A DNA stretch of 64,000 nt, taken from contig OZ176053.1 in the NCBI GenBank assembly GCA_964247055.1, forward strand, positions 4,898,001 through 4,962,000. The letters are read 5' to 3'. This DNA is from Paragordius varius (Eukaryota > Animalia > Nematomorpha). Every line of letters begins with the position of its first letter. Position 1 is the first letter of the stretch. A model generated the notes under the pieces. It made no database searches. It was not told the DNA's origin and was given only the letters and a program-made list of their open reading frames with translations. The position numbers and the translations under genes are program-made. This document shows, one piece after another, positions 1 to 62,081 of this stretch.

Positions 1-390
1 AAAAATTTGCAAAAATACCACAATATCACTAATTAATGAAGCCGTAAATGTTTTTAAAAAAATATTCCAGGGCGATTGCAATATATGAGCCAGAACTATC
101 TTTCAAAGCGGATTCTGGGGAAAATAGTCGTTAGCAACCTTAGATGGATAACGTTAAAAAATGGGACTAGTAAATTAAATTTCATCTTTGTTTTGCAAAC
201 TTTTCCAAAGCTTATGACTCTGTGGGAAACAATACATTATACTTTTTAGCTGATGCAGTTTTTTGTCAGGTTTCCTTCAACCCATATACTTGGCCTTATT
301 AGTAGCCAAGCCCCACGAGCCATACCCTAGTCCGAATGAAGAGCGGTCTGTGGCACTGCATATTATATCCGTTGCTATTTAGTGTTTGTG
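1..390 (+). mobile_element. Decayed RTE-type LINE reverse transcriptase fragment (duplicate of about 17826-18215)
   Basis: Broken frames retain RT motifs LCFANFSKAYDSV (about 185-223) and GLWHCILYPLLF (about 345-380, like GLRQGCILSPLLF). Confidence 0.7.
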
Positions 391-947
391 TATATAGAAA
401 GCATTTTCCTCACTGTTGATTCAAATGGAGTCCAAACGAATTTTTTTAATAACTAACTTAATCCGCACCAATACAATTGTTTATCTTTAAATAAACAAAA
501 CTGTTGTAAATACTGGGACCCCTTACGATACACTTTTTAAAACAAAGCACATTATGAGAGAGATCATGCTGATTAACATGTATTTTCCTAATTTTTAATC
601 GTAGTAGTTTGTATGTTTATAATCATTTTAAGTTGAGTGGACCTCTCCACAAACTATTCGTGAATGTGTGGGGACCTCATTTAAATTAAATCATTTTTAT
701 GTTCCAAATAAATCTAAAGAATAATATTTAATTTTATATATTTTTTCTCAAAAAGGATGATGCGCATATCATATATTTTCCCATAAATGGAATCATGGGA
801 AGTGGGAGAGTAGGAGTCTACTGAACTACAAAAAGCAAACAAGGGTTTTGCTTTAATCCAAAGGTCATCAATTTAATTAAAACATTTGATAAAAAGTAGA
901 TGTTAATTTTTGTGTTTAGACCAAGGACACTGAATATTAAAACTAAC

Positions 948-1087
948 CTTCTATAAAGTCATCGTATTTATCACAAACTTTATGGCATATTCCTTGAGTT
1001 ACACATCTTTGTTGTGTGTTATCAAAAAAGGTATTCTGTGGACAATCAATTATTGAGTTTTGACCCTTTGCTTTGCAAATTATATAC
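948..1087 (-). CDS. Internal exon encoding a chitin-binding type-2 (CBM14/peritrophin-A) domain, copy 1
   Basis: AAG acceptor at 1089-1088 and GTTAGT donor at 947. Reads YIICKAKGQNSIIDCPQNTFFDNTQQRCVTQGICHKVCDKYDDFIE, with the Y-x2-C, CP-x3-FD and C-x5-C spacing of CBM14. Its terminal exon would lie left of the window. Confidence 0.8.
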
Positions 1088-1236
1088 CTTTATTTATGTA
1101 ATGATATAATAAAATTTGTATTTGATTGGGCTAAGTTTGAATATTGAATATATATGATTATATAAACTGTTAATTAATCATGCATTAATTACTTGGAGTC
1201 GGGCATGAAAGAAATAATTAACTATCCTGAATATTA

Positions 1237-1704
1237 TTAAAAAGACCCAATATCAATTATTTCAGCTGAGGAAGATATACGTTCATGGTATAATGTAATG
1301 TTTTTCCCAACTGTTTCATTGAGATGTGGGAGAGACACCATTTGATCCATATAATGTTGGTCAGGGACAATATTTCCGCTTGCTCTAGCTAGAGCATCCT
1401 TTATTGCAGGTTGTAAAGGGAGGGATCGATCACTATACAACAAATTGTGCGATTCAATTAGAGAGTCTCCAGACTGAGTATTTCCTTGATAATCGATTAA
1501 ACAAGCGCTCCTTTTAGCATTATTCATAAGACTGGCTTGTTGCGCGAAACCCGACAATGTGAGCACATAATTATCGCGCTTGTTGACATTATTCTCATTC
1601 GCCATTCTATTACTTGTTTGTAAATCGGGAACCAAGTGTGATGTGGATATTGGGCACACAAAATATCCCAATATTGCATAAACGCAAAGCATCGGAAGAA
1701 TCAT
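1237..1704 (-). CDS. Secreted protein of an unrecognised family (LVPDL family, paralog 1); possibly exon 1 of the CBM14 gene
   Basis: 155-codon ATG ORF with a hydrophobic N-terminal signal-peptide-like segment and N-glycosylation sequons NET and NIT. 25/45 ungapped identities to the 12489-12893 ORF. Confidence 0.85.
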   Translation of the reverse strand: MILPMLCVYAILGYFVCPISTSHLVPDLQTSNRMANENNVNKRDNYVLTLSGFAQQASLMNNAKRSACLIDYQGNTQSGDSLIESHNLLYSDRSLPLQPAIKDALARASGNIVPDQHYMDQMVSLPHLNETVGKNITLYHERISSSAEIIDIGSF

Positions 1705-2559
1705 GTTAAAAATTTAGTGAATCTGTCTATAATTCGTTTAAACAAAAATGTTAAATTTTATATACAATCGATTTTGGTAAAAAACGTGTAATGCTAGGTA
1801 AGCAATATTATCATCTTACATCAAATATTTTTTACACCTAAACGTCTAAATAAACAATGATGTAATAATTCTAGTAATACATATTTAGGCGTATTACGTC
1901 TATAAACTTATTTTTCTTCGTTCGGCTAAGAATAATATTTGTTTAATACCGTGTATAACCTTGAAAATATTTTTCCGATACCGTTTCTGATTTATAAAAG
2001 CTACGTGCTTTTCAAACACTTTATAATAAATATATATTATACGAGCGTACACTGTTGCTGTGAATTCAGTCAAATAACTATTATATGGGTTATGCTTTCA
2101 CATAGTTATTTATTATCATGCCGGGTACAAACGGATTTTTCTCATTTTTGGTATTAATTTAAATTTACTATGAACATTGGGATGTGTTATATGTTAAAAT
2201 AGATCCTTTTGCTATGATATAGTTATAATAATGGATATGTTTCCTTTAATATGGATGAATATCCAAGATTAAAATTGAACGTCTGACTATAATCTATATT
2301 GGGCCTAATTTTATTCAAGGGGACCTTAAGGTTTTCAAAAAAATTAATGCAATTTTGAGTAGTTATTTCAAAGATGGTAGCGAACAAAGCATCAAAATAG
2401 GCTAAATATAGTCAGTAAATGTTTTAAAAGTATATAAACGCACACATAATTGTAATAATTTGTATCAATTTGTTCTGCCAATTACATATTTTAAATTTAT
2501 ATATTGTAAAAGTCCTTTTGATATTTACCTATATTTATTGGGATTTAAATAATTTAGCG

Positions 2560-2934
2560 GTTTTTATATTCAGGTTTCGGATGCAGCCTAACCACAAAGA
2601 AAATTAAAAATAGTCCCTATATTTTAACGGGTATGCAGATTTATAGGTTTTCTAAGTAGCTCTAATACCAAATTTTTGGGTATTCTCAATTTTTAAAAAG
2701 TTCTTTTTAGCCTATTATAAGGCTTGACCATATTGTGCCCATCTTTTAATGTTCAGGCACAAACTAATTTATTTATATAAAGATGGATGACCATCAATTT
2801 TACTATAATTTATAACTAATGTGACCAGATATTTTGAACTTGGACGCAGTGCAAACTTAAAACATTTGCCTGTTTTTACACCATCGGTGTGGTATATTAC
2901 CAAGTTTTCACAAAAAATATCCTGATGAATTATA

Positions 2935-2979
<45 letters not shown>

Positions 2980-4929
2980 GTATATATTCTGATAGGAAAA
3001 TATCAGGATTATCATGGTGCTTTTAGTTATAACCTTTACGATTATTAGAGAAAGTTATTTACAGTTTAGTGGTAAGTGCTCCGTATAAAATTGCAAAAGG
3101 TGCGTCATTTTTATTAAAAATTTTTTTTGGTAAAGGCTAAATGCTTTTTTTCAAAAAATATCCAGAAAATATAACATAAACCACATATAAAAAGCAAAAC
3201 AATATTTTTAAAAATTTTAAATTTTTAGATGTGAGCTCTAAAAATCCCAAATTTTTTGACTCTTTTAAAATGGACTATTCTAAAATAAACGCGAAATTCC
3301 AATAATTTTAAATATGCGCTAAATTTTGATATAATTTTTCAATCAGAATTTTGATTAAAATATTCGTTCGTAAAATTTATGTTAAATAAAAATTGTGTTT
3401 TTTTACAAAAATACACCGAAATTCGCAAGGAAACAAACCTTTAAATTAAAATTCTGAATGTTCAACATCATCGAATTATTTAGAAAAAGGTTTTTATTAT
3501 ATCTTAAAGCCTTATGCCGTTTCATCATACTTCAAAATCGTTAGAAGTACGCTTCAACATCAAATTTGTTAATGCAAAAAAATAAGAAAACTAATAAAAA
3601 TTAAAGTTTAGGCAAAAATTAAGTAATATCATACCTTCTACCAATGGAGTATGGTAAACGTAAAACTCTTAATTTTTACGAACAAAAAGGTTATTTCGAA
3701 TTCGTATGCCATAATAATAAATTATATATAATAGGTACGGAATAACAATTTTTTTATAATATAATTATAACAAAAAATGAACTTTCTAAACTTGATCAAA
3801 CATTTATTAAAATATCACAAATTAATTTTAAATTTTGAGGCTCCGCTTTTTGCGGAAGCCCTAAGTGAAAGACAAATTGTCTGAATCTTACGGTGGAGTC
3901 CAATAATAGTTTCGTCACTGCGCGAAAGGCTGCAATCACCGAACCAAAATCCAATTTTATGTATAATCCGAGCAGAAAATTAAATATTAATCAATTAAAA
4001 ATAGACAATTTTAGTTTTTTACCGCAAAAAACATTACAAATTATGGGGTTATTTTTACAGTGGGTGCTATATCAAATTCTAAAATATTTTCTTGAATAAA
4101 TAAAAGGTAATTAATATATTATCATAAATAATTAAATTTTTTTTAATTTCAAAAAGCAGTACAAAAGTGGGCGCAGTACAGTTGCAGTTTTTTTCTGAAA
4201 ATCCAGTACTGTACTGCGAAAAACAGCCTATCTGGTCACATTATTTATAACCGCATGCATCGAAACTTGTAGTCACGAAATTAATAAGTATGATGTCGAT
4301 ATTTAAGACTTCGAAAAAATCATAAACAATTTGTAATTCATTAAAATATTATATTAATTTATCCGTTATTAGCCAGATTCTTAAACTGTGGTTTAACAAT
4401 TTTATGCGGCCATATTATTTATCCAAAAATGTAGGGATAAATATTTTTTACATTATGTAATACAGCTTACACTGTCATTTAGGCAGAATCGACTACCTGT
4501 TGCATATTGTGAAATCAGCAGGCATAGAGAAAGATGCAATTGTTTGTTTTGTAATAACATCTTAGTCATAAGAGATGGAGGGTTCGAAAAAATTTTTAAA
4601 TGTAAAATATTGGCTGTTAAAGAGCATACATCACTTATATTAACATAAGGTAGAGGATTAGCGCAGTGTCCACAAATGCTATCGCCTTTTTTACGCTAAA
4701 AAACGGCCAGCCGCATTTAAAATATATATGCGCAATAAAATAATTTAAATAGCACTGTAAAATTTAAATAAAATATAACATTTTTTCTACATGGTTACTA
4801 ATTGGACAAATTTAGAAATTTGTTAATAATATCAATTTAGCTAAAATTTTGTAGGTATATGTGGGCAGATTCCAAATTTTTCTAAAGCTGCACATAATAT
4901 TTTGGATGGCCGCATTTTTGAAACCCATG
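2560..4929 (-). mobile_element. Decayed hAT (Charlie/Spin-like) transposase remnant, split by the 2817-4243 insertion
   Basis: Minus-strand frames with stops at about 4260-4620 read MQQVVDSA..V..LHNVKIF..FLDK.YG..LLNHSLRIWL..KL..YFNELQIVYDF (like the VRWLS region) and resume left of 2809. A Charlie-like end CATGGGTTTCAAAAATGCGGCC starts at 4929. The left boundary is uncertain. Confidence 0.5.
2817..4243 (+). mobile_element. Non-autonomous hAT element, copy A
   Basis: TIRs TAATGTGACCAGAT...ATCTGGTCACATTA and a perfect 8-bp TSD TTTATAAC (2809-2816, 4244-4251). Contains an internal (TA)n tract at 2941-2975. Confidence 0.93.
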
Positions 4930-5407
4930 GTATCAAGATATATCAAGAACAGATTATAGCAGCACGTCGACACTGTCTCAAAAGACGTCTGCTGCCCTTC
5001 TATACACTAATAAATGATGTTTCAGTGATAGAGGTATCTTGTTTGCTTATTAAAATGTATCATGCACTTTTATTATCAATGCGAAGCATCTTCATAACTA
5101 AAGATATTCAAAATTATAACACATATTTCAAGTGAGATTATAATATTATTCGCATACTCACTATTTTTTAAAATTCGATTGCAGGTTTATAAATTTACTA
5201 ATGATTTTAAAGTTTTTTCAACGAAATGTTAGAAAAAACATTCCGATGATTAATTAGAGTCTTTCACATTTATGTATTATCCAATTAATTGGATCGAAAT
5301 TAAATTTATTTTTTACGGCTACCTGGATGCACATAATTCTAAACCCGTAAATTAAAATTATTTGGGATGAAGAGCTTTATAAAATAATAATTTTATACGC
5401 ATCTTCA

Positions 5408-5526
5408 TAATACGACCATATCACGTTGAAAACACCGGTTCCCTTCCGAACACCGAAGTTAAGCAACGTTGAGCCCGGTTAGTACTTGGATGGGTGACCG
5501 CCTGGGAATCCCGGGTGTCGTAATTT
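5408..5526 (+). rRNA. 5S rRNA gene (solitary copy; may be a pseudogene)
   Basis: TACGACCATATCACGTTGAAAACACCGG...AGTTAAGC (A box)...AGTACTTGGATGGGTGACCGCCTGGGAA (C box)...GGGTGTCGTA, followed directly by a T-run Pol III terminator. Helix pairings TACGAC/GTCGTA, GTTC/GAAC and CCCGG/CCGGG are intact. Confidence 0.93.
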
Positions 5527-5984
5527 TTTTTATATTTTTTTGGTATTAATCAGTTTTTACAAGGTCATAATTATTTTATAATGTTTTGAAAGCGACCTAT
5601 TCCTGCGAATTTGTAATTCCAAAATAATGAATCGGTTGCAGTATGGACAATACTTAAACACTTTGATTCAAATTGACGTATCTAAATACCCAAACAATAT
5701 TTACTTGATATTTTAAAAAACTACTGAAAGAAACGGTACCAATTTAAATTTATGCTTCTATCCTTATGAAAATTATATAAAGAAACCAGTTTTGAAAAAA
5801 TAGTTCCCTATCAAACTATTTCGACGCCATTTTTATTTTTCAACATTTTTGCGAAATATCGTGTTTATTTGATTCTAGGCTCAAGTTGTTTACTTTTTTA
5901 TTAAAATCACATGTAACATTCCTATATACTTTAATTCTATTTTTAGCTTAAGCACACTTGTGAAGTTGGCTTAATTTAGTCTTA

Positions 5985-7288
5985 GGCCCATGTGAATGAG
6001 CCAGTTGAGCAGGCTCATTCACCACTTTTAATGATCCAGGTGAATGAGCCTTCCTCATTCTGTTGAGATGGAGGAATTTTTAATCCTGGTTTTTTCAGGA
6101 TTAAGCTTGTTACAAAAGCCGATATCTCGAGAACTAGGAAGAATTTTTGGAATCTGCAAACTGTATTAGCCTTAATAAAGTATATTTAATATATGTATAT
6201 GGTAGGTTTTGGAAATTTTGGACATGTATTAAAAAATATTTTTCGGGCAAATGCTTACTAAAGGTTAGATGCTTTATTTTTATATATTTAGGCAAGAAAT
6301 GGTAGTTAGTTCGAGTTTATAAGCAAGTTTACTGAATATTTAGAAAATCATGGTATAACTACTGATATGTTATTTCAAGAATTTAGAAGAAATCATTCTA
6401 AATGGTAAAATAATCAGGAATATTATCGAGTATTTTAAATTTGGTTTATTTTAGACATGAAACTCTGCTACTTACTAATGATAATCGGAGTATTCGGTAA
6501 TACATATTTCTATAAGGCGATAGGTAACATTGACGAAAATGAGTTAGCAAACTTTTATCAGAAGAGCAGACAACACCTATATTGAATAGCCATCAGACAG
6601 GAGTAGATCGGAAAAAAGAATTAATTTGACATAATTTTATTTATAATTTATTTTTACACAATAAATGAATATATTTTATAAATGTATTATTGGTTTGGCC
6701 CAGTTATTGGGATTCCATGGATTTATTTACGATATATGTCTCTATCATTTGTTGCGTTTCGAGGTATGTTCAGGAATTTAAAGTCTTGTTCTATAGTCAG
6801 TTGTTTTAGACCTCCCTTTTCGGTTAAGGGCAGGGATCTGTAAATAAAGAATTTCTTTTGCAGGTGAGTCTATACTGGATCTGTCTATGTGTCCAAAATA
6901 CCGAAGTCTATTCTGATAAAAGCTGTTATTGGTTCTAGTTCAATGGTAGAATTTATCATTATAGGGCATTTTGTCTTCCGTTCTCAATCTCGATTCTAAT
7001 GTTTTTGTGATTGCCCAATTTAAATATTGATCATTTTTTCGGCTAAAGCCTCCCAGACCTTAAGCTTTTTGTCATTGCTGAATTTATTTACGGATTCATA
7101 AAGATGAATGGATATCTATAAATTATTTGAACATAACCTAAATCGCGTGTAGAACTGTTATCCATCATACTGATAAAAATTTTAAAAACTCCCACCTCAA
7201 AAACTCAATCATCTCCCTCAAACATATGCTTCCTCATAATCCATAATCCAGGTGAATGAGCTTGAAAATTGGCTCATTCACATGGCCC
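5985..7288. mobile_element. PIF/Harbinger element, internally deleted
   Basis: 18-bp TIRs GGCCCATGTGAATGAGCC / GGCTCATTCACATGGCCC (1 mismatch) and 3-bp TTA TSD. Minus-strand Myb/SANT-like remnant LYESVNKFSNDKKLKVWEALAEKM (about 7030-7110) faces a possible transposase C-terminal remnant on +. Confidence 0.88.
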
Positions 7289-7493
7289 TTAGTTTTACCT
7301 CTAAATAATTAATATCAAGTATTTTTAAATAAATTTTTATACGGTTTTAATGTTTTACAAGTGCAAACTTTTGCCATAGTTTCAATTTATTCCATATTTT
7401 TTGAAATAGTAATTTTAAACAAGCCTGGTAGCCAACGATCCCAATTTGAATCGAAGGACTGAAATTAAGTTGCATCCAAGTGGTAATATACAG

Positions 7494-7750
7494 CAGGGGT
7501 GTTCAACACATGGCCCTCCAAAATATTCCTGAAACCCGCTAGAAATTTCAAATACAAAATTTTACGTTTAAACCTTTCTGATAAATCTTTTTAAATTCAA
7601 TGAATTAGCAAAAAATATTATAGTTGTTTTTGCAGGGTCTAAAATCCAATAAAATATTTGTTAATGCCCGTATATTTTTTAAATAGGGCCCGCCAGATTT
7701 TTTGTTCAAAAAAATGCGGCCAGAGAAGCCATTTGTGTTGAATACCCCTG
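7494..7750. mobile_element. hAT-Charlie-like MITE
   Basis: TIRs CAGGGGTGTTCAACAC / GTGTTGAATACCCCTG with subterminal GGCCC/GCGGCC motifs. TSD not recognisable. Confidence 0.75.
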
Positions 7751-7891
7751 AACATCTGTATTTTTATTGGCAAAAACTGTAGAAAATTTCTTAGCTTATA
7801 TGAGATTTTTCATATTTATGATGTCATATTTAATTGAATTATTTGGAAAAAATTTACAGTGGCACTTGAATTTGTTTGCATAGGAATATGA

Positions 7892-9947
7892 TAATGTGAC
7901 CAGATAAGCTGTTTTTCGCAGTACAGTACTGGTCATAAAAAAACTGCGCCTGTACTGCGCCCCTTTTTGTACTGCTTTTTGAAATTAAAAAAATCTTATA
8001 TTTATTAAAAAAATTATTTTAGAACTTAATATAGTACCCTATGTAAAAATAACCCCATGATTTGTAAAGAAATGGTTCAATCGGTAAAAAAACTATAATT
8101 AGCCTATTTTTAATTGGTGAATATTTTATTTACTGCTCGAATTATACATAAAACTTAAGATTGCAGCTTTTCGCGCAGTGGCGTCTAAATTATATAAAAA
8201 ATTGTTATTCTCGTAACATATTATATACAATTCATTATATATGGCCTATGATTTCGAAATAACCTTTTTTTCATATAAAAAATTAAGAGTTTTTACGTTT
8301 TCTATACACATTAGGTGTGAGTTATGATATCACTTAATTTTTTTCCCAAACTTTAATTTAGTTTACTTATTTTTGGCATAAACAAATATGAGATATTTTG
8401 TTTAATCTAACTTCCTACGATTTTGAAACATGATGGAAACGGTATAACGCTTTATGACAATGACAATAGCACGGGGTACACCCCTTCGTACAATTGGTGA
8501 ACCAATTGTCAGAGTACCGTGAGCTATATAAGTATTTGGAAAAAAACCTTTTAAAACTTTTCTAATAAAATTTTTATGATTGCAAATGTTTGTATATATA
8601 TATGTATGTATATAAAATATTATTGTGATTTAATTTTTTACTGTAAGTTAGTGTTATTAAATTTGATTATTAGAAAAAAAAAGAAATACAAAAAAATACC
8701 GTACATAACCTGCGTTTTGGAAAGGACATTATTGTTTGATTTTTGGAACAGTTGATAATAATTGAGTTGTTGATATGCGACAATAGTTTTAATTAAATGA
8801 AACGTTAACGACAAAAAACAATTATGATTTAACCGAGCAGACGATAACCCAAATAAAATTTAAAGAATATATGATTAAAAGATTATTAAAAATATAATTT
8901 AGTAGAAAAGGGTACTTATCTTTGATTTTCCTGAGGCATAGGTACTGTTCCCCTAAACAACTGAAGTTTTACCAGTGACTCAACTTTTATTATAAAAGAA
9001 TTCATTTCCGAGTATCGAAAAACTTCATCAGGGTAATAAGCCTCTTTGGATTGCATTCTTTAATGGAATCATCCATATCCCTAAAGTATAAATATATAAT
9101 ATGTATTTGATGGTTTTGGTGTGTTTTTCTAATATCCAAAAGGCAGACGATTTCGACCGAATCGCCTTCTTGGTATAACGCTTTAAGATTTAATAATTCC
9201 ATTTTCCTACACATGATGATGTTGAACATCACTATAGGTTCAAATTTTTAATTTAAAGATTTTGGTGCAAATTTAGGTGAATTGTATAAAACACAATTTT
9301 TATTTAACCTAAATTTGACAACGAACAAATATTTTAATCAAAATTTTGATTGAGAATTAGCATTAAAATATCTACATAAAATGTTATAACACCTCAACCG
9401 TTTATGTTTCCATCATGTTAAAAATAATATGAAGTACGCTTGAACAAAATTTTTTTAAAAATTAATTTTTTGAAGTGGGCATTAAAAAAATATATTTAGT
9501 TGATATCAAAATTTAGTATATATTCAAAATTGCACAATGTCGAAATTTTTGCGTTTATTTTAAGAGAAGAGTCCATTTTAAAAGAGCCAAAAAATTTGGG
9601 ACTTTCATAGCCCACATCTAAAAATTTAAAAATATTTTTTGCATTTTATATGCAGTTTATGTTATATTTTATGAAATAAAGCATTTAGCTTTCACCAAAA
9701 AATATATTTGAAAAAATTGCGCACCTTTTGCAATTTCATTGGAGCACCTACCAAAAAGTGTAAATAACTTTCTTTTTTGTAAAGGTTAAAACTAAAAGCA
9801 CCATGATAATCCTGATATTTTCCTATCTATATATTTCATAAGGATAATTTTTTGTGGAAACTGTGTAAAATTTTACACCGATGGTGTAAAAACAGGTAAA
9901 ATATGTTTTAATTTTGTAGTCCAAGTTCAAAATATCTGGTCACATTA
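7892..9947 (-). mobile_element. Non-autonomous hAT element, copy B (inverted relative to copy A)
   Basis: Same TIRs as copy A, perfect 8-bp TSD GAATATGA (7884-7891, 9948-9955), collinear with the reverse complement of 2817-4243 apart from one insertion. Confidence 0.93.
8455..9171 (-). mobile_element. 5'-truncated retro-insertion (non-LTR element or retrocopy) nested in hAT copy B
   Basis: 717 bp absent from copy A, flanked by a 14-bp direct repeat GGTATAACGCTTTA (8441-8454, 9172-9185). The minus-strand 3' end has a CAATTGG-TTCA-CCAATTG hairpin and an ATTGTCATTGTCA tail. Confidence 0.8.
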
Positions 9948-10217
9948 GAATATGATGTTAGCAATATTGAAAATATTATAAAAATATTAAATTTGAATAA
10001 ATATTACAAACAAAAGTAATTTTGGATATTGTTTACGCTAAAGTGTTATTGTATTATTATATATGGAATCAATCAGCAAAAATTATATAATTTATTCATA
10101 TATAATAAAAGTAATTTTCTATTTCAAATTAATTTTTTGCTTTTAATATTCCATGACTTGAATATTAAAACCATTCGTTTTATCAATTTGTAAAATATGG
10201 ATGGATCAAAATTGTAA

Positions 10218-11288
10218 TCTATATATTTATAAAAATGGAAAATGCTGGCTTTGTGATCTGGTACAGGAAAACCGGTAGACCCAATCAAATCCAAATATCG
10301 AAAAAATATAATCATTAATGAATGCCCCGACAATAGCTTCGCCCTTTTTTTGAAATAGGCCCCCAGTTCGGGCCCTTCCTGTATGAAAAACGGTTTTTTT
10401 TTGAAAACAGAAGTCTACAAAAATCGTGTCTTTGAGACAATTTTCCGGATAACGTGTTGGACCATTCAATTTCAAATATGATTATTGTTTACTTATTTTC
10501 GATTGCGCCGAACATAGCCGAGCCACTTTTTTGATTTAGGCCCTCTTTTTACCCGCTACCCCCGTAAAATGCCACCTTTTTCAAAAAACAAAGTCCACAA
10601 AAATAATTTTTTAAATCGATTTTTCGCCCTAGGTATGAGACCGTAAAAATTCTATATGGATTCCACGTATTCCCTGTTAAAAGGCAAAAATTTTAGTCTA
10701 CCGTTTATTTGATGATAGCTGCTGGGTAAGGAGCTACCCGCTAAAAACTGATTTTTCATATAACTTTGTGATCTGTTTCCGGAAAACCGGTGAACCCAAT
10801 CAAATCCAAACATCGAAAAAATTTAATCATTAATGAAAGCCCCGACAATAGCTTAGCCCTTTTTTGGAATTAGGTCCCCAGTTCGGGCCCACCCCGTGTG
10901 AAAAATGGGTTAAGTAAATTTTTTGGAGAACGTGTTGGCCCATTCAATTTCAAATATGATTTTTGTTTACTTATTTTTGATCGCGCTGAACATAGTCGAC
11001 TCACTTTTTTGATTTAGACCTTTTTTTTCCCGCTACCCCCGTAAAATGCCATTTTTATCAAAAAAAAGTCCACAAAAATAATTTTTTAAATCTATTTCTC
11101 CCCCAAGTAAACAATAAATTAGTATGAATGCACCGTTTTAAGATTCCTATGAAATCATAGATATTAAATAATTTTTCGAAATATCCACATATGTAGATCA
11201 TTTTATTGTCCCTTTTTCAAATAACCCCCTCCCCCCAGAAGTCCGAAGGACTTCCTCGGGCTGCGTAGCAGCACGAGATTTATGCTAG
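10218..11288 (+). mobile_element. Non-autonomous Helitron with an internal tandem duplication of about 515 bp
   Basis: A|TCTATATATTTATAAAAATG 5' end; 3' GC-rich hairpin CTCG-G-GCTGC-GTA-GCAGC-A-CGAG followed by CTAG|T; no TSD. Repeat units at about 10249-10630 and 10763-11105. Confidence 0.88.
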
Positions 11289-12488
11289 TATCACATAAAA
11301 ATATCTTTTTTGTTAACAAATTGGATTTGATTAAATATTTCTTTTTTTAATTGATTGAATCTCCTGACAATGAGTTTTGCGGAAATGGAATCAATCATTA
11401 TTTTAACTTCATAAACGACGATATTCACATCATTTGCATACATATTTCGTAAAAATAACTTTAAATTCATCTGCTAAACTTGCTGAAAAAAATATTTCTA
11501 GCATTATAAATCATTGCGAACTAATTCGAGTTCGAATGTATTTTTCAAAATATCAACTAACACTCCATTACCTTTTGGGGTTGTTTTAAAACCCAGAGCG
11601 ATTTCATTTTATCCCTTAAAAAGTATTAATGTAGGCCGGATATACAAATATGATTTCTTTAGCCTTTAACCGTTTAATTTAATATCAGCTGTTCGTTTCA
11701 ATCGTGTTTTGGAGCTGTCCCAATTTTAGACTCTAGAAGTCACAAAACTGTAAAAAGTTAAAAGCTTTTTCATCCAATGCATTACAACAATGTTTGATAA
11801 TTAAATTTTAACTAAAAAAACTTTTAAAACTGTAGTTTATTTACAAAATGGACTCTATATATAAAACTACCCCAAAAGTAGACTAGGACAAAAAAGTGAA
11901 AAGGTAATCAAGTGTCAAATGTGTAATTAAAAATCTACATGCTACCCAATTAAATATTCTTTTACCCAATTAAAATTCCAATATGAACTATAATAATGGT
12001 TCTTGTTACTGTTTTTCAGAAGAAAATAGATTATCAACTCATGGGGTTGAAATGCAAATACAATCTCCAAAAAATACCATTGTTTAAATATATCATCTAC
12101 ATCAGTTTTCATTTCAAAATTCTAGAATATTTTAAAAAATCATTCAAATCGAAAATATTATAGCGTTTTAAAAACCTTTATATTGCTTCGAGGGGTACAA
12201 TTAATTCTATTAATTGTTTATTTTTTAAAAAATTACTTATAATTTCAATGTTTAAATATCTAAATAACTTAAATAACTGGTTCAGTCAAAAATGTTCAAA
12301 AGACTAAATAAGTTGCTATATGGTTGTTTTGGTTAATTGATGCAAATTTCAAAAAGAAGAAACAATTGGAGTGAGCTCAAACAAATATTTGCTTTCGTAC
12401 GATATGTTTATCGTAAACATGCATGGCACTAAAATTGATATATTTAATTTTGTCAAAAAACTTTAATTAAATAGAAAATTATTATATC

Positions 12489-12893
12489 ATGTTAATTAAG
12501 ATATCATTTATTCTGCTCATCATTGTAAATGAGATATATCATTTTAATATTCTGGCAGATTTGGTCCCAGATTTACGAATAAGTAATGATATTGCATTCA
12601 CGAATAACGTCAATAAAACAGGGAATTACGTATTTGTTTTGGATAGTTTTTATCAACAAACCCAGCTAATTAATTATGCCAAAAAACAACACTGCGCTAT
12701 TGCCAATTCCACGCTGAATTTCGCTTATGGCAGTTTACCGAACTTCATTAAATCACAAAATTTGTTTTATAGTAAATTTGAAGATAAAACGCTAAGGCCT
12801 GGTATTCAAGATGCAATAACAGGTAACGAGGTATCCGAATACTGTCACGATAAAAGCGAAAATGAGACAAATCGTGTTGAGTTTCATAGTTGA
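12489..12893 (+). CDS. Secreted protein of an unrecognised family (LVPDL family, paralog 2)
   Basis: 134-codon ATG ORF with a hydrophobic N-terminus, sequons NKT, NST and NET, and clear homology to 1237-1704, including a shared Cys and the I.S.NL.YS...L.P.I.DA block. Confidence 0.85.
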   Translation: MLIKISFILLIIVNEIYHFNILADLVPDLRISNDIAFTNNVNKTGNYVFVLDSFYQQTQLINYAKKQHCAIANSTLNFAYGSLPNFIKSQNLFYSKFEDKTLRPGIQDAITGNEVSEYCHDKSENETNRVEFHS

Positions 12894-13810
12894 TTTATTG
12901 TATGGATGATAAAGTGAAAGATAATAGATTTATGAAAAGGACAAAAATAAATTTTATTTGATTGCTTAGGAGGATGGGGTAAAGCCAAGGTTAAAAGGCT
13001 TAAATTGAAGACGACTAATAAAAAGATGAACACTAATATGGGTAGGGAGAGAGAGAGGGAGAGAGTAAATATTTTTAAATACAAAATGGTTTTAGTCGGC
13101 CGATGATACAATATTTTTACCAACAAACACCGCGAAATTGGGACAAGGGTAAACACAAGCTCGTTACATTTAATAATAGATATAATGTTCGTTTTAGCAA
13201 TTTGATTATTCCAATTACTTTCCCACATATATATTATTTTTGGGGGAGAACTATAGGTAAGGCTAAATTTGATATGGATGTTTGGGGTTAAAATTGTTTT
13301 TTTTTTCAAACATATTTTCCCAAAGTAAATGATGAATAACCGCTTGTAGATACAAGGTCATTTATTCGCACCAGTCATTTAAATATATTATTAAATAGGT
13401 TGGGGTTATATATTTATAAATTTAATGAAATGCGTTGTCATATAAACCAAAAATTGTAATTTATACAATGTACAAACGTGCCAGGCTTACAATATACTAA
13501 ATTATAAAATTAACGAATTTGATATGAGTAACATTATAAATTAACTAAAAAGTATGCTTTATAATGCCGAATCATACCGAACTTCAGAAAATTGTAGTGT
13601 TAAAATGCTGTATATCATTTTTAACCAGAGTTTTGTTATACACCAGGACGAACGATAGATAGAATTTGTTCTTTATACTTTTGCGTCAACCACTAAATAA
13701 ACCCATGAATGCATTCTGACCGTGACTTAATCCCGTTAAAAAATACCATTCAAAAAAATTTGAACTTATGGCTTACGATATTTTAAATATAGAGTAATGG
13801 CATAAATTTA

Positions 13811-14270
13811 ATATACCATTTGCACTTCAAGAGTGTCCTTGAACACTTCAAGTTGGCCCTTCAACATTTTAAGTTGGTCCTTGAATTTAAGTTGGTCCTT
13901 GAACACTTCAAGTTGGTCCTTGATCACTTCGGGTCCTTAAGATTTTTAAATATTGATTTAACCATAATTATTGTATATATTTTTTTTATTTTATTATTTT
14001 TTAACCTAATTTCCTTTATTAAATATATATGTTTCTCATTTAAAATATATTTTTTAATTAGGAAATATCCAAAATAATTTTAAAAAATCAAAAAAAGATA
14101 TACTGTTTTTCAATTATTAATAATTGATATTGATTTGAAATTATGTTAAATAATTGAAAATAGGTCAAAAACGATAAAATAGATGAATGATTTACGATTT
14201 GATTGATAAAAGTTTAAAACAAAACCAACTCGAAGTGTTCAAGGACCAACTTGAAATGCAAATGGTATAT
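13811..14270. mobile_element. MITE with ATATACCATTTGCA TIRs and 21-bp subterminal repeats
   Basis: 21-bp TIRs with 20/21 match. Units GTTGGTCCTTGAACACTTCAA are repeated at the left end and inverted at the right end. Confidence 0.85.
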
Positions 14271-14885
14271 CCCAAATTGACATAAAATATAAGACTGTGT
14301 TTTAATTGGTTGAAATCAAAATTTAATTAGTTAGCATGAATGTTGACATTTATGGTATTAATTGAGTGATTATTAAGTATATCGAGTGTCGGATAAAAAA
14401 ATTACGTATAAGTCGATATGAGATAATGTAAGTTTACATATGTTTATTTATGTGAAAAAATTGTACATATATATAAATTTACAAAGACGGAACGCAAAAA
14501 CTAAAAGACAATTGAAATGACAGTCATACTTTTTTAAACTTACTTTTATGATAACAATTATGTTGTATATGAGGGCGGGCAGCATGTGGCCCTCCGAGAC
14601 TCTTTGTACCGGCCTCTAAAAAGTTGAAAATCCACAATTTGCAAAAATATGTTTATAAAATATTAGTAAAATCAATAATAAGTCTTTTTAATTGGTAACA
14701 AACTAGAAATAATTGTTTGATTGTGTTTACATTTTATATTCGTATGTTTAAAATCTAATAAATTAATTATGAATGCCCATATATATTCTAAATGCGGTTC
14801 TCCATTTTTTTTAGTTCAATATGGCCTGCGAAGCCATTTTGGTGGGACACCCCTGATTTATATAATTGAATTTGTTACCAATTTC

Positions 14886-15145
14886 CAGTGGGGTAACTAG
14901 TGGGGGGAAAGGGGGGCTGATACACCGGGTGCCATAGTTGGAGGGGCGCCGGATTTAAAATTTGTAATTTTGTTTCAAAAAAAAATAGGTGTTTAAAAGT
15001 TATCTTTTAAATAATAAATACAAAATGACCTATTTATGAGTGGTCATGACCATGGTTATAAAAAATACAAGGGGTTGTTTGGAGGGGGAGGGGGCGCTAT
15101 CACGGATTCCCGCACTGGGCGCCAGAAATGTAAGCTACGCATCTG
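14886..15145. mobile_element. hAT MITE
   Basis: Ends CAGTGGGGTAACT...AGCTACGCATCTG; 8-bp TSD CCAATTTC/CCAATTTG (7/8). A Charlie-like MITE abuts it at about 14570-14855. Confidence 0.75.
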
Positions 15146-15761
15146 CCAATTTGCATCTTTATATTTTGCCACCCCAAACGATAAAATACATTTAAGATTA
15201 ACGTTTAAAAAAGTATGGTTGTATGTTTTAAAATAAATTTCCAATAGTTTTAATGTTTTGCCTTTATAATTTTATTTTTTACCATATTTTTATAAAGATA
15301 AGCTAAATAGGATATAAATATAAAAATATCAAGGTGTAAAAATTTGTATACATAAGAGCCTTGTTTTTAAAAAAACCGGCTTCAAAGCGATCATAGAAAT
15401 TAGGGATCGGTCTTTTCTTCAGGTATCATATTTTATGGGTGTTTCAATTTAAAAAATAACTGTGTTAAAGCGGTTTTCGTAAAAATGAATTATGTGGTTA
15501 AGCCTTGAGCAGTGGTAACCTTGGTGGTAAAACCAAGAAACGGCACCTGGCTCTATAAAAATATATATCTTTCACATTCCTGAATCGAAAATTAAACAAT
15601 TTTATTTTTAGCCTATTTATATCCATATTATTATCATTTTTAATACATAATATAGCTCTTCATTTCATCTATTTATACCTACAGTTTTGCTAAAATGTAT
15701 TATACAAAATTAAGTTAAATCCTTTACTCTTAGTTAAATTGTAAATTTATCATATTTGCAA

Positions 15762-16255
15762 ATATACCATTTGAACTTTAAAAGTATCCTAGAACACTCT
15801 GAACACTTTAGGTTGGTCCTTAAACTATTATTTTTTTGAATTTTATCAATTAAACTGTGTATGATTAATCTATTTTATCATATTTAACCTATTCTCTTGA
15901 TTTGACCAAACCTTTATATCAAAATCAACTTTTGAACATTGAGAAACCAGATATCTTTTTTATGTTCTTAAAAAATATATTGATAAAAAGATTTTAACGT
16001 GTAATTAAAAAAAAACAAGTTTTTTGTGTTATTAATTACAATTTTTGTTGAAAACATTTAAAAGTATCTTATTGTTGGATTGAATTTTGAGTAGTCATAT
16101 AATAAATCAAGAAGATTAGGTTACAATAAAACAAATAAACACATGCAAAATTTATCGTTAAATTCAAATTTAAAATTTTAAGGACCAACTTAAAGTGTTC
16201 CAACTTAAATGTTCAAGGATCAACTTGAAGTGTTTAAGGAACTTGAAAATTGTAT
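15762..16255. mobile_element. Second, more decayed copy of the ATATACCATTTG MITE family
   Basis: Left end ATATACCATTTGAAC, with GTTGGTCCTT / AAGGACCAAC subterminal repeats in inverted arrangement. Right TIR eroded. Confidence 0.7.
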
Positions 16256-16968
16256 AATAAAAAAGGTAAAAGCACAAAATCTATTCATTTTTTACATATT
16301 AAAGATTTACTTAAGTTTATTTTTGCATTTTTTACAGTTATTTTCTAATCATCAATGATAATATCGATAAAAGGGCAAAGGCCAAGATTACGAGATAATA
16401 AATTTGAAATAAATTTATAAGTTGTAAAAACATTATAAATGTCACTAGAATATTTATAAAATTAAATCTGAAGATTTTTAACATGATGTAAACGTTTTAA
16501 ATTAAATAGTATAAAAACACTTTTTTACATAACACGGTACGGCCAAAATAAAATAACTCATAGCATTTTTATTTTGATATTCAGTCCCCTTTTTAATTAT
16601 TAAAATAAATTGAATGCAAACTGATAATACTTTTTAAATCTAGCAAAAATTATTTATACCGTTATCAGAAGCAATATGGTATAAACTATATAATAATGCA
16701 AACATATACATTTACGTAAGCAATGGCACAACTTGTATAATAGTTTTTCTTTTTTGTTATATTATTCAAGCATTTCTAAAAATAAATTTTTAAACGCAAA
16801 GAACAAAATTAATATATTTAATTGAGTTTAAAAAGAGTTCAGGCTGCCTTAGAATCCAAGGATTAAATCCCATTTATATTTAACCAAAAAAGTTACATTT
16901 TTATTAAAACAAATATTTATTTGATTTATTTTTATTGCATGGAATAAGTAAAACGCAAAGTCTAACTA

Positions 16969-18912
16969 TCAAAGTTCGGTAGATTTTTTTGGTTGATTAA
17001 CAATTTGGCTTGTACAGGTGGTGGAATCGACTGCGCTAGATGCCACACAACCAAATATATCATTGGCAAATAACATGTTGTTCACGCAATAGCCTTCAAC
17101 AAACACCCCACCAAAACATCTTCGAAACTGTTTACAACCGGTTCCAATTTTAGCTAAATTATGTATAATAGAAAAAAATGAGTTTGTTTTGATTAACCAA
17201 TGATCGTGATAGTAACAATTGTTAAAGTATGCGCTATAGTCTAAATTTTTTGGCTAATCGACATAGTATTACCTATAACTATAAATAATTGCCCGCCCGC
17301 CTTTTTTTAGTAATAACCGCTTTGCAGCAACATGAAAATCCTGATATTATGGATTGTTTGTGATAACTAATTTATTGGCTTACGAAACATTGTAATATGC
17401 CGACAAATTTTAGGCCGAAACTTTCATCTTTAATTATAGTGATGGGACTAAAAAATTACTAAAAAACGGCTAATAATATCATCTTCCTAAAAAATTCAAA
17501 TATAGCCCCATGGAAACCCACATGGCGAACTTCTGACGGACAAAAACAAAGTCGCTTAAGTATGTGAAAAATATCATAGTATGGATCTAATGCAAATAAT
17601 ATACTGACAAACACCAAAATCCCGGCTACCTCCAATTCTTAACGAAGAAATAGAATGGACAAGAATTTCTTATTAACAAAGCGGAATACATAACATACCC
17701 AGGAAACTATTCAGCATATACCTTTCAAAATCAATCTCTATTTAAAAAAATTTCAACCATGAAAGTTTCCAATAAATGACTGGTTAAAATTAATGGTGAT
17801 ACCTATCTATAAAAAAGGTTATCCTAAAAATTTGCAAAAATACCACAATATCACTAATTAATGAAGCCGTAAATGTTTTTAAAAAAATATTCCAGGGCGA
17901 TTGCAATATATGAGCCAGAACTATCTTTCAAAGCGGATTCTGGGGAAAATAGTCGTTAGCAACCTTAGATGGATAACGTTAAAAAATGGGACTAGTAAAT
18001 TAAATTTCATCTTTGTTTTGCAAACTTTTCCAAAGCTTATGACTCTGTGGGAAACAATACATTATACTTTTTAGCTGATGCAGTTTTTTGTCAGGTTTCC
18101 TTCAACCCATATACTTGGCCTTATTAGTAGCCAAGCCCCACGAGCCATACCCTAGTCCGAATGAAGAGCGGTCTGTGGCACTGCATATTATATCCGTTGC
18201 TATTTAGTGTTTGTGTATATAGAAAGCATTTTCCTCACTGTTGATTCAAATGGAGTCCAAACGAATTTTTTTAATAACTAACTTAATCCGCACCAATACA
18301 ATTGTTTATCTTTAAATAAACAAAACTGTTGTAAATACTGGGACCCCTTACGATACACTTTTTAAAACAAAGCACATTATGAGAGAGATCATGCTGATTA
18401 ACATGTATTTTCCTAATTTTTAATCGTAGTAGTTTGTATGTTTATAATCATTTTAAGTTGAGTGGACCTCTCCACAAACTATTCGTGAATGTGTGGGGAC
18501 CTCATTTAAATTAAATCATTTTTATGTTCCAAATAAATCTAAAGAATAATATTTAATTTTATATATTTTTTCTCAAAAAGGATGATGCGCATATCATATA
18601 TTTTCCCATAAATGGAATCATGGGAAGTGGGAGAGTAGGAGTCTACTGAACTACAAAAAGCAAACAAGGGTTTTGCTTTAATCCAAAGGTCATCAATTTA
18701 ATTAAAACATTTGATAAAAAGTAGATGTTAATTTTTGTGTTTAGACCAAGGACACTGAATATTAAAACTAACCTTCTATAAAGTCATCGTATTTATCACA
18801 AACTTTATGGCATATTCCTTGAGTTACACATCTTTGTTGTGTGTTATCAAAAAAGGTATTCTGTGGACAATCAATTATTGAGTTTTGACCCTTTGCTTTG
18901 CAAATTATATAC
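16969..18912 (-). CDS. Tandem chitin-binding type-2 (CBM14) domain gene, 3' exons 18912-18773 and 17153-16969; 5' exon missing or not found
   Basis: The phase-1 donor (GAA G|GTTAGT) joins the phase-1 acceptor (TTTAG|CT) across a 1619-nt intron. This gives a complete 6-Cys second domain CDKYDDFIEAKIGTGCKQFRRCFGGVFVEGYCVNNMLFANDIFGCVASSAVDSTTC, then TGA and AATAAA about 35 nt downstream. Confidence 0.85.
17560..18215 (+). mobile_element. Decayed RTE-type LINE RT fragment inside the CBM14 intron, antisense to the gene
   Basis: Motifs PPILNEEIEW, WLKLMVIPIYKKGYPK, QSGF, LCFANFSKAYDSV and GLWHCILYPLLF, with frameshifts. Confidence 0.75.
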
Positions 18913-19117
18913 CTTTATTTATGTAATGATATAATAAAATTTGTATTTGATTGGGCTAAGTTTGAATATTGAATATATATGATTATATAAACTGTTAATT
19001 AATCATGCATTAATTACTTGGAGTCGGGCATGAAAGAAATAATTAACTATCCTGAATATTATTAAAAAGACCCAATATCAATTATTTCAGCTGAGGAAGA
19101 TATACGTTCATGGTATA
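17826..19117. repeat. Segmental duplication, copy 2 (matches 1-1292)
   Basis: See copy 1. The left boundary cannot be fixed because copy 1 runs off the window. Confidence 0.97.
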
Positions 19118-20769
19118 TTAAAAAGACAAGATTCAAATTGATTTATATCAAAATATTTTAGTATAGTTAAAAAAAATTTTTAAACATATATAATATAATA
19201 ACCCTTTAATCTATGCATTCATATTGAACCAAAATTTGCGAAATATTAATAAATATAACTTAGATCATATCTAAGTTTTATAATTTTTGATCACGTATGC
19301 GAATAAATTGATTTTTTCCGATCCTAACCATATATGGAAAAAGTGGAAAAAAAATTTTTATATTTAAGATGTAGATGTCGCAACGGTTATATTAAGCTAG
19401 GTGTGATATCCTTAGGAAAAGTTCACCCTCAATTTACACACTGTGATACAGGAGAACAATAGTGAAAATCCCTTCAAAACAGTAGTTATTTATAACAAGA
19501 TCTAGCTAGCTCTGGGATATAAAACTAGGGACCCCTTAAGTTTTTACTAATATATTATATATATATTTTATGTTTTAATTTTAGTAAATGATGGCCAAAG
19601 TATTAAATCGAATTCTGAGATTATATAATCGAATTATGTAAAAAAGTGTTTTATTTATGATGCTTTATTCAATTTCCTGCATCCTTCAAACTAACAAGTA
19701 CGCTTCAATTTATGATTTTATTAACACTTCATGACCTTTTCATTTTGCTCGCGATGACATATTTGGGTTTCCAGAGCAATCCTGTAATACTGTTTTTAAA
19801 GTTATTTTGTAAAATTCTGAACATTGTTCTTCTAATTTATAATGAAGCTTATATTTTTTACAGTTTTGTAACTTGTAGAGTCTTAACTCGGAAAACACGA
19901 ATGAGGTAAATAGCGATTTTATCCATAAATATCAAGCTTTTGTTGGTAAAATGCAACCTGAAAGCTTACCAAAGTTATATATATATTTACATTTTCTAAC
20001 ACTAATATATTTATTTGCCTATTATAGCGATTTGAAAACTTCAGGAATAAAAATGGCGGCGAAACAGGTTAAGATGGGTATTTATTAAAATTTTGCATTT
20101 TTTAAAAAATTTTCTTTTATTATACTACAAGGCTTGCATATTTATAAATTTGGGCAATACACTAAATACTTTTCTAGGTTAAATTTCAAATCGCTCTGGA
20201 ATAAAAAATCACAAGTAAATGTCATGAAGAGTTAAAGCAAATAACGTAATATTTTATGTGATCATATATTTAAAAATTGCCATTCTTGCTTTGCTATTTC
20301 AAGGTCATCTCATCTCAACCAGAGTTAAAAATGGGTATTTTTTGAGAAAAAATAATACAAACTTAAATTGAAGCTTACTTCTATCCAGAATTTATAGTTT
20401 TTCATGTATGCATTTTACCATATCTAAATTAGAGTATATCTAAATCTCATTTGCAGATTCTGCTAAAAAACTTATTTTCTAAGTTTCTTTTTTATATTTT
20501 TTTGCTTTTTCTAAATATATATATGGGGCCAGAAAATTTAAAAGCTGCCAATGTTGTTGATAATATCACTTCAATAAAAAAGATGTGCAGTTCATTTATT
20601 TTTAAATAATTATTTTAATTTATGACCTGTCGCTAAACAATAAATATGTTAGATTAATTATAGGGACCAGATTTATTGTAAATTTTTGCCATGGTTGATT
20701 ATTAACACTATTATGTCAATAAAACATCAATTTTCAATATATTATGTAGATTATTTAATTTGATAAAAG

Positions 20770-21560
20770 AATGTATCGAAATTCGCATGGTGCTTTTACT
20801 TTTGGGGCTTACAAGTGCTTTAGAAAAATCATTAAAACTTTTATGGTAACTCATATCAGAAACAAAATCGCGCACTTTTTCGGCATATTTTTTGTGAAAG
20901 CTTAATGCTTTCCAAATAATCTCCTTGTAAAATATACTATATTCAAAGAGTCAACATAATTTTAATTTTTAGATGTGGAATGAAAAAGGGTTAAATTTTT
21001 AGACCCTTGCACAGTGTCTTAAAAAATATCCTCCTGAAATAAATATATTTTGATGGAAAATATATCAAGATTATCATGGTGCTTCGTTGGCCCAATAGAG
21101 TGATTTAAAAAAAGCTATCTACACTTTTGTAGTAAGTGCTTTATATCCGAAAATGGCAAAATTTCCGTGTATATTTTCAAGATTTTGAGATAACCTAATG
21201 TTTTAATTAAACAATATCGCTATTATAATTTACATATTAAAAGCAAAAAATTTTCAAAAAATCTAATTTTTAGATCTAGGCTCTTAAAGCAAATTTTTTG
21301 TTTCGTCAAAAATGGACTATTTCTTAACCCGAAAATGACAAGATCTATAGAAATTATAAATATATGCAAAATTTTGATATCAAGAAAAAATATTAAAATG
21401 CATATTTTTTTCAAAAAAAATAATTTTAAGATGGAAACGATATAAAAACGCTTGGTACGTCTCTAATGTTAGGTATTAAATCAAGTTTTATACAAATACA
21501 AAATTTTAAACGATAATATATAATTCTCAGGTAAAAATGTTAGTATCATTGAATTATATT
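20770..21560 (+). mobile_element. Decayed fragments related to the hAT copy A/B family
   Basis: Shared internal motifs TATCAAGATTATCATGGTGCTT, AAAATGGACTATT and CATGGTGCTTTT. No intact ends. Confidence 0.55.
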
Positions 21561-61236: not shown

Positions 61237-62010
61237 TCAGTTTATTTGTCGTAGTGTTGATTTTTTTCTTATTATACGTTTAACATTTTCTAATAGGTCT
61301 GGTCGATTTCTGTGGAAAGAGGGGTGCAAGTACTCATGAAGTTCTTCAAAAACTATCCATTTATCATTGTAAAAATTGGTTACACTATTACTATTTATTG
61401 GATGATTTGTAATTTCTTGGGTATTAGTTTGATTGGATGATTTTAATTGCATTTTTCCAGTATCCCCATATCTACATTTGTAGTATATTTTGTTGCCTAA
61501 ATACAACTTATTTATTTCGACATTTTCATTGCTATATACTTGCATATTTGGATATTTGTTAACTCCTCTGTTATCCAAATCGTAATAAACGGGTGTCATT
61601 GGAGACGCCGATCCATTTTCCAATATCTCTTGAAAGTTTTGTACAAAGTTTTGGCCATTTGCCACTAATTTATTTTGATGTTTTGAGGATGGGTTTCTTT
61701 CAGACCATCTTGCTACCTTTTTGAACCCGTACAAATTTAGTTGACGTATAAAACTAGCAATATTTTTGGTATTAAATTCGACACATTTCGTCGTTTCCAT
61801 GTATTTGGGATATGCATTAACTAACATTGGTGAGACCTCAAAATCATCCAAATATCTGCGTTTGAAACGCTCAAAATTAATAAAAATTGTGGTGCCATTG
61901 GTGGACCAAAATATTTCTCCGGTCATACAAGTGCTTGCTAAACGATACAACTTGATTGGAAATGATTCTGGTCCCATCAATAGAATGGGAGGATTGTTAA
62001 AATTATTCAT
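61237..62010 (-). CDS. Heat-shock-factor-type DNA-binding protein (HSF5/HSFY-like), DBD only, intronless, 257 aa from the first ATG
   Basis: FPIKLYRL, IFWSTNGTTIFIN, FNTKNIASFIRQLNLYGFKKV and EYLHPSFHRNRPDLLENVKR. The stop follows about 12 codons after the domain. The ORF-track start at 62046 is a TTG. Confidence 0.92.
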   Translation of the reverse strand: MNNFNNPPILLMGPESFPIKLYRLASTCMTGEIFWSTNGTTIFINFERFKRRYLDDFEVSPMLVNAYPKYMETTKCVEFNTKNIASFIRQLNLYGFKKVARWSERNPSSKHQNKLVANGQNFVQNFQEILENGSASPMTPVYYDLDNRGVNKYPNMQVYSNENVEINKLYLGNKIYYKCRYGDTGKMQLKSSNQTNTQEITNHPINSNSVTNFYNDKWIVFEELHEYLHPSFHRNRPDLLENVKRIIRKKSTLRQIN

Positions 62011-62081
62011 TGTGTTTATAAAAAAAATAAAAATAGTTGCCCTCAAATTAACTTTCAGCTTTTTATGTCATGATTTTAACC

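Follow-up and report, generated by a model that had tools for sequence, protein, structure and literature searches.

Two Truncated First Exons and Their Complete Source Genes

A stretch of 64,000 nucleotides from Paragordius varius (Nematomorpha; assembly GCA_964247055.1, contig OZ176053.1, positions 4,898,001 to 4,962,000; hereafter the window) harbors two open reading frames (ORFs), A and B, which are analyzed here together with the gene pair from which they were copied. The window belongs to contig C4 of the 110-Mb assembly, is AT-rich (22–32% guanine plus cytosine), and contains few long ORFs. ORF A (1237–1704, minus strand) codes for 155 amino acids and ORF B (12489–12893, plus strand) for 134; both were found as described in the original prediction, lying head-to-head with 10,784 bases between them. 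BLASTP aligned their products with 42 of 96 residues identical (44%, E 2e-18), far beyond chance, and both the 45-residue block pointed out earlier (25/45 identical) and a second block were recovered. Each ORF opens, as read from the sequence, with an uncharged hydrophobic run (residues 5–17 in A and 5–13 in B) followed by small residues, as the earlier description of a signal peptide-like start had it. No domain was found in A or B by the Pfam scan, which likewise agrees with that description. A and B are old paralogs, with signal peptide-like leaders and N-glycosylation sequons.

When the entire assembly was searched in six frames with ORF A, four places were returned, all on C4, two of them being the window ORFs. 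The other two matches lie ∼390 kb downstream, at 5300901 (plus strand, A') and 5292843 (minus strand, B'), again head-to-head, and the reading frames there extend further than in the window copies. They belong to a complete divergent gene pair (C4:5290502–5302691) in which B' (minus strand) and A' (plus strand) have three exons each (∼167/122/87 codons in A' and ∼172/126/89 codons in B'). The introns are of the GT-AG type, both in phase 2, and interrupt the two genes at the same places. Synonymous sites between A' and B' are saturated at 44% amino acid identity.

Comparison with these genes showed that A and B are first-exon fragments truncated at the 3' end and not complete genes. Positions 1249–1704 of the window are a copy of codons 1–152 of the 167-codon exon 1 of A', matched ungapped; beyond the breakpoint, ORF A reads through three unrelated codons to a stop, and the last 15 codons of the exon are lacking. 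Positions 12489–12818 are a copy of codons 1–110 of the 172-codon exon 1 of B'; beyond codon 110 the homology decays over 16 bases and fades by 12834, about 19–25 codons of unrelated read-through into a repeat (R2) follow, and about 60 codons of the exon are lacking. Exons 2 and 3 of either gene do not occur in the window, and whole-genome searches found them only at the source locus (C4:5290502–5292228 and 5301898–5302691). That both frames were kept open, on which the original prediction had relied, is uninformative; the truncated copies run to the first stop beyond their breakpoints. The NET sequon that A and B were said to share also does not stand, the NET of B being located in the unrelated read-through past the breakpoint and the homologous site of B' reading NES.

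An Inverted Partial Segmental Duplication

The DNA homology of the window to the source locus ends at 1249 and 12834. Between these points lies an inverted partial segmental duplicate, a copy of C4:5301356 down to 5292498, observed as blastn blocks in inverted order with identities of 97.7%, 94.2%, 77%, 89.7%, and 93.4%. The A-side block, which includes ORF A, shows 97.7% nucleotide identity to C4:5299784–5301356. The duplicate holds only the shared intergenic/upstream region and the 5' parts of both first exons.

The intergenic region is longer in the window than at the source, and three dispersed repeats absent from the source locus were found in the window copy. The repeat at 2817–4239, a gap in the alignment with the source, has at least 129 matches across contigs at ∼73–82% identity; that at 5985–7290 is young, with 97% identical copies on C5 and C7, and corresponds to a gap in the source alignment between 5977 and 7289; the third, at 10211–11285, is a high-copy unit of ∼1.06 kb with dozens of copies at 90–98% identity, elsewhere often in tandem arrays. 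This unit is single in the window, and long tandem arrays of it are present, e.g., at C4:10507347–10514601, C1:8322123–8328299, and C6:6144903–6152135. The two ORFs had been described as separated almost only by transposons. This is borne out insofar as ∼3.8 kb of the spacer consists of dispersed high-copy repeats; no transposon protein ORF was present among the window ORFs, however, and much of the remaining spacer copies the source locus's own intergenic DNA.

The divergence between duplicate and source is uneven, at 1–3% on the A side (1249–2816), 6.6–9% on the B side (11286–12488), and 23% in the block 7289–7892. The two copies seem to have gone through more than one history, by way of conversion or error-prone repair.

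Serpin Identity of the Source Genes

The exons of A' and B' were searched and aligned separately. Exon 2 of A' had weak matches at three other loci (E 1e-3 to 5e-2) whose ORFs show serpin hallmarks, and two of these (L008 and L009) pass the Pfam Serpin model. A genome scan with this model (PF00079) gave 87 exon matches, the usual plan being three exons that correspond to profile positions 2–174, 175–290, and 290–370; the A' and B' loci were absent from this genome-wide scan. The serpin family is partly tandemly amplified, with members on contigs C7 (2.73–3.03 Mb), C10, C3, C5, and C4 (9.52 Mb), and several of the matches contain in-frame stops, suggesting many pseudogenes.

Comparison of A' and B' with the Pfam-verified serpins of the same genome by hhalign gave 94% probability for exon 2 (1.2e-7) and 92% for exon 3 (7.7e-7). 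With hidden Markov models (HMMs) of six canonical exons, the exons of A' and B' outranked all of 1583 background ORFs taken from the window and the source region, at E values of 3e-9 and 1e-4 (exon 2) and of 7e-6 and 2e-4 (exon 3). Exon 3 of B' by itself matched exon 3 of a Pfam-verified serpin (E 1.3e-3), and the sole matches of an exon-3 profile among PDB sequences were serpin C-terminal peptides; the exon-1 and exon-2 profiles gave only chance-level matches there. The gene structure is in agreement with this homology: in A', B', L008, L009, and L021, intron 1 is a phase 2 intron immediately following K-P-F-D/Q, and in the others it is placed within one codon of this position. The C-terminal motif P-F/Y-hydrophobic ... 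G-R-Y ... P is also kept in both genes. A protein atlas returned nothing usable for exon 1 and only unrelated matches below 0.9 for exon 2. Exon 2 of A' scored 18 bits (cut-off 27) against DUF7073 (PF23264), exon 2 of B' gave no such match, and the similarity was taken as chance.

On this sequence evidence, A' and B' are classed as very divergent serpin-type genes. The sequences are consistent with the proposed old duplication of a secreted glycoprotein, as far as paralogy, leaders, and sequons go; the family is not an unrecognised one, exons 2 and 3 of its complete members matching Pfam-verified serpins with which they share the intron position and phase. A match to a known family, which had been named beforehand as speaking against a new family, was found indirectly, via serpin paralogs in the genome and not via Pfam itself. 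Since the exons for the sheet A core, the loop, and the C-terminal strands are absent from A and B, the window copies cannot encode a serpin body.

Exon 1, the Part Represented in the Window

Exon 1 is the most divergent part of A' and B'. Against the closest serpin subfamily, hhalign gave a weak match (P 0.0019) whose 81 colinear columns extend up to the end of the exon, and the top four non-self matches of the exon-1 HMM were serpin first exons, all colinear, each weak at E 0.1–0.2. Multiple alignment placed the N-Y-V motif of the original prediction where the strand ahead of the usual serpin S-P begins, and its second block on the serpin I..N..Y.D...L.P stretch; exon 1 terminates in the F/W...K-P-F strand. 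Exon 1 may share the serpin fold. In an exhaustive HMMER search, the exon-1 profile had no match among 1.84 billion representative proteins, and exon 1 is therefore lineage-specific at the sequence level, in agreement with the earlier proposal; for the part borne by the window, no relative outside this genome could be detected at that level. A word-index protein search with ORF A was also blank, which is uninformative, as its length filter excludes full-length kin of ∼380 amino acids.

Reactive-Centre Loop and Likely Function of the Parent Genes

The distance from the H/Q position of strand 5 of sheet A to the P-F/Y motif is 26–27 residues in A' and B' vs. 34–37 in six canonical paralogs, i.e., the reactive-centre loop is 8–10 residues short. 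Inhibitory serpins need for loop insertion a hinge with the P17–P9 consensus E[EKR]G[TS] followed by four small residues (PMC2770083). This consensus was not found in A' and B', where bulky and charged residues occur in the aligned stretches. The motif was recognisable in five of the six canonical paralogs, and the sixth (L008) keeps only the T-E-G-A-A part. Because the loop is short and the hinge consensus is absent, A' and B' are probably non-inhibitory; their products would be secreted, glycosylated serpin-fold proteins. Absence of the hinge motif has been reported for 12 of 29 (42%) Drosophila melanogaster serpins, most of which are of unknown function (PMC2770083).

Repeats at the Breakpoints and Neighboring CBM_14 ORFs

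Both truncation points are associated with a repeat. R2 (12834–19117, plus strand, 6284 bases) is a direct copy of R1 (window −4990 to 1292, i.e., C4:4893010–4899292, plus strand), the right-hand part of which constitutes window 1–1292. The two are 99.97% identical, with 2 mismatches and 1 indel in 6284 bases, and are the only full copies in the genome, 11.5 kb apart. The pair goes back either to a local duplication of very recent date or to a problem of the assembly. The left end of R2 is the point where ORF B is cut, and the truncation of B looks very recent because the cut coincides with the edge of so identical a repeat. The right end of R2 repeats the last 44 homologous bases of A, and R1 includes these bases together with the breakpoint of A; as this breakpoint lies 44 bases inside the repeat, it is older than the duplication of the repeat.

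Five mismatches were observed in the final 16 bases beside the B junction. The 10-mer TTAAAAAGAC occurs just outside the breakpoint of A (1237–1246) and again outside the right end of R2 (19118–19127); it could be a target-site duplication, a rearrangement microhomology, or an AT-rich chance occurrence (post hoc p ∼0.02). Short tandem repeats that translate, on either strand, into repeated S-W-S-L-N-N/S-S units occur both upstream of B' (L003:2414–3190, C4:5293286–5294062) and within the repeat (window 13820–14077); the copy of the B upstream region in the window lacks them.

Downstream of A and on the same strand (minus), two partial, exon-like CBM_14 ORFs were identified with Pfam (PF01607, chitin-binding Peritrophin-A; E 1.6e-5 and 6e-4). 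One, in the frame of A, lies at 946–1089, and the other at −853 to −572 with a copy at 16972–17253. A weak GT is present at the breakpoint of A and an AG 159 nt beyond it. The missing 5' exons of the CBM_14 gene were not found upstream of R2 (19118–24000, minus strand). A chimeric A-CBM_14 transcript is possible on paper only.

Origin and Present State of ORFs A and B

The preferred explanation, given a probability of roughly 0.7, is that A and B are truncated first-exon pieces in an inverted duplicate of a very divergent, probably non-inhibitory serpin-type gene pair. The complete pair consists of the divergently transcribed, putatively secreted serpin-fold genes B' (minus) and A' (plus), each with three exons. 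An inverted segmental duplication placed a copy ∼390 kb upstream of it, in the present window, with the upstream region common to the pair and the first part of each gene kept and exons 2 and 3 left behind; the truncation of B, at the edge of the 6.3-kb repeat, looks very recent. The parents retain the serpin exon plan and C-terminal core motif and have lost the Ala-rich hinge, 8–10 loop residues, and the helix C-D region, and their proteins probably bind a partner instead of trapping a protease. The copies in the window are most likely gene relics now.

Several observations weigh against this account, some bearing on the serpin identity and others on the relic state. As to identity, none of the exons of A and B or of the parents A' and B' was matched by the Pfam Serpin model (gathering cut-off 27 bits), with E values as high as 10 allowed, and exon 1, the sole part present in the window, appears linked to serpins only weakly: the first hhalign comparison with serpins gave a weak E of 0.089, the reverse search with a plain HMM was not significant, and an AlphaFold2 model of exon 1 alone (4-row alignment) was unusable, with a mean predicted local distance difference test score of 33.6. 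The Pfam blank in A and B, the blank word search (blind to full-length kin), the lack of anything usable in the atlas, and an exon-1 profile without a match among 1.84 billion proteins speak for A and B as a new secreted family unrelated to any known domain. Such a family is nevertheless very improbable, since exons 2 and 3 of the same genes are homologous to serpins, the intron position and phase are common with serpins, and exon 1 is colinear with serpin exon 1 to the exon end. As to the relic state, A differs from A' at 13 coding positions, 10 of them synonymous and 3 changing an amino acid, which corresponds to 0.008 non-synonymous substitutions per site (dN), 0.11 synonymous ones (dS), and a dN/dS of 0.08, while the non-coding DNA flanking A is only 1.1–2.2% different from the source; under free drift ∼65% of the differences would be expected to change an amino acid, and 3 or fewer of 13 has P ∼0.003. 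For B, 9 coding differences from B' were counted in 330 nt, with 5 amino acid changes, 4 of them in the leader; the leader differs at 6 of 72 bases, and the mature-coding part at 3 of 258 sites vs. 6.6–9% in the flanks (Fisher 8e-6). Simple gene conversion would not yield a synonymous bias. Given the synonymous bias between A and A', selection may have acted on the fragments up to a recent time or may be acting even now.

These substitution patterns speak for truncated copies that still work, either as short secreted proteins made up of a signal peptide and the N-terminal part of a serpin or, in the case of A, spliced to CBM_14 exons. The start codons, leaders, and entire shared upstream region are kept in both copies, the CBM_14 ORFs follow A, sharing its strand and frame, and the GT at the breakpoint and the AG 159 nt on could serve for splicing. 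However, the candidate donor, GTCTTT, is unlike those seen in A', B', and the canonical serpin genes (GTATGT, GTAAGT, GTTAGT, and GTATAT); the CBM_14 ORF begins in mid-domain, at profile position 17, so that a fusion would have an incomplete domain; and the synonymous/non-synonymous ratio of B is without power, given its 5 amino acid changes with 4 in the leader. The selection signal may also predate a late truncation; the pattern is most economically explained by a duplicate that used to be more complete, was functional then, and was cut short only later. The alternative would be that the fragments are translated to this day. Working copies are regarded as unlikely. It is similarly doubtful that A, at least, has been preserved by selection as a new gene, be it for a short secreted protein or as the first exon of a CBM_14 chimera; if true, gene birth from a duplicated fragment would have been caught in the act. 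An artefact of assembly in part, in which the 6.3-kb repeats are two haplotypes placed in series and the truncation of B is unreal, is suggested by the near identity of R1 and R2 and by their two copies only, 11.5 kb apart. It is considered improbable, because the homology of B fades within the 16 bases preceding the junction, in the manner of a real breakpoint; the inverted duplicate, 2–10% diverged from its source and with its own repeat insertions, is not itself an artefact.

The false call of a new family is removed by these results, and the ORFs belong to the serpin superfamily. This family is large in the present genome (87 exon matches) and in places too divergent for Pfam; for annotation, domain scans alone miss such genes here, and in-genome paralogs and intron positions are needed. 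If the source organism is a parasitic hairworm, secreted relatives of serpins would be plausible candidates for interaction with its host. That a truncated copy has diverged with a bias to synonymous sites is a small but real puzzle in the evolution of gene fragments left by partial duplication.

Two further candidates were noted by eye elsewhere in the window: a septin-like exon whose long N-terminus is Asn-rich and of low complexity (38101–39120, plus strand) and an ORF with a heat-shock-factor-type DNA-binding motif (61237–62046, minus strand).

Comparison With Known Systems

Among known systems, A' and B' are closest to the serpin superfamily (PF00079, MEROPS I4), with which they share the three-exon plan, the phase 2 intron 1 after K-P-F, profile-level homology of exons 2 and 3, and the C-terminal motif; a putative N-terminal secretion leader is present as in the canonical paralogs, among them L008 and L009, whose leaders are typical. 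They differ in escaping the Pfam model in every exon, in an exon 1 that is ∼30–40 residues shorter in the helix C-D region, and in the replacement of the S-P that usually follows the N-Y-V strand, and the window copies hold under half of the protein. The minimal viral serpin CrmA of cowpox is without helix D and keeps a full inhibitory loop and hinge. It may serve as an analogy for a serpin body that tolerates helix C-D loss, as A' and B' would, with no relationship implied beyond the superfamily.

The window copies resemble the gene fragments left by partial segmental duplications, in which likewise an upstream region and 5' coding ends are carried along, the frames end at the first stop, and repeat insertions and rearrangement follow. 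Unlike what is expected for long-dead gene fragments, A and A' differ mainly at synonymous sites. The parent genes may be compared with the non-inhibitory serpins of Drosophila (PMC2770083), which also have no small-residue run in the hinge, are secreted and of unknown function, and have been duplicated within serpin clusters; A' and B' go further in that their loop is, in addition, 8–10 residues shorter than that of their own canonical paralogs and their sequences have diverged beyond the reach of Pfam.

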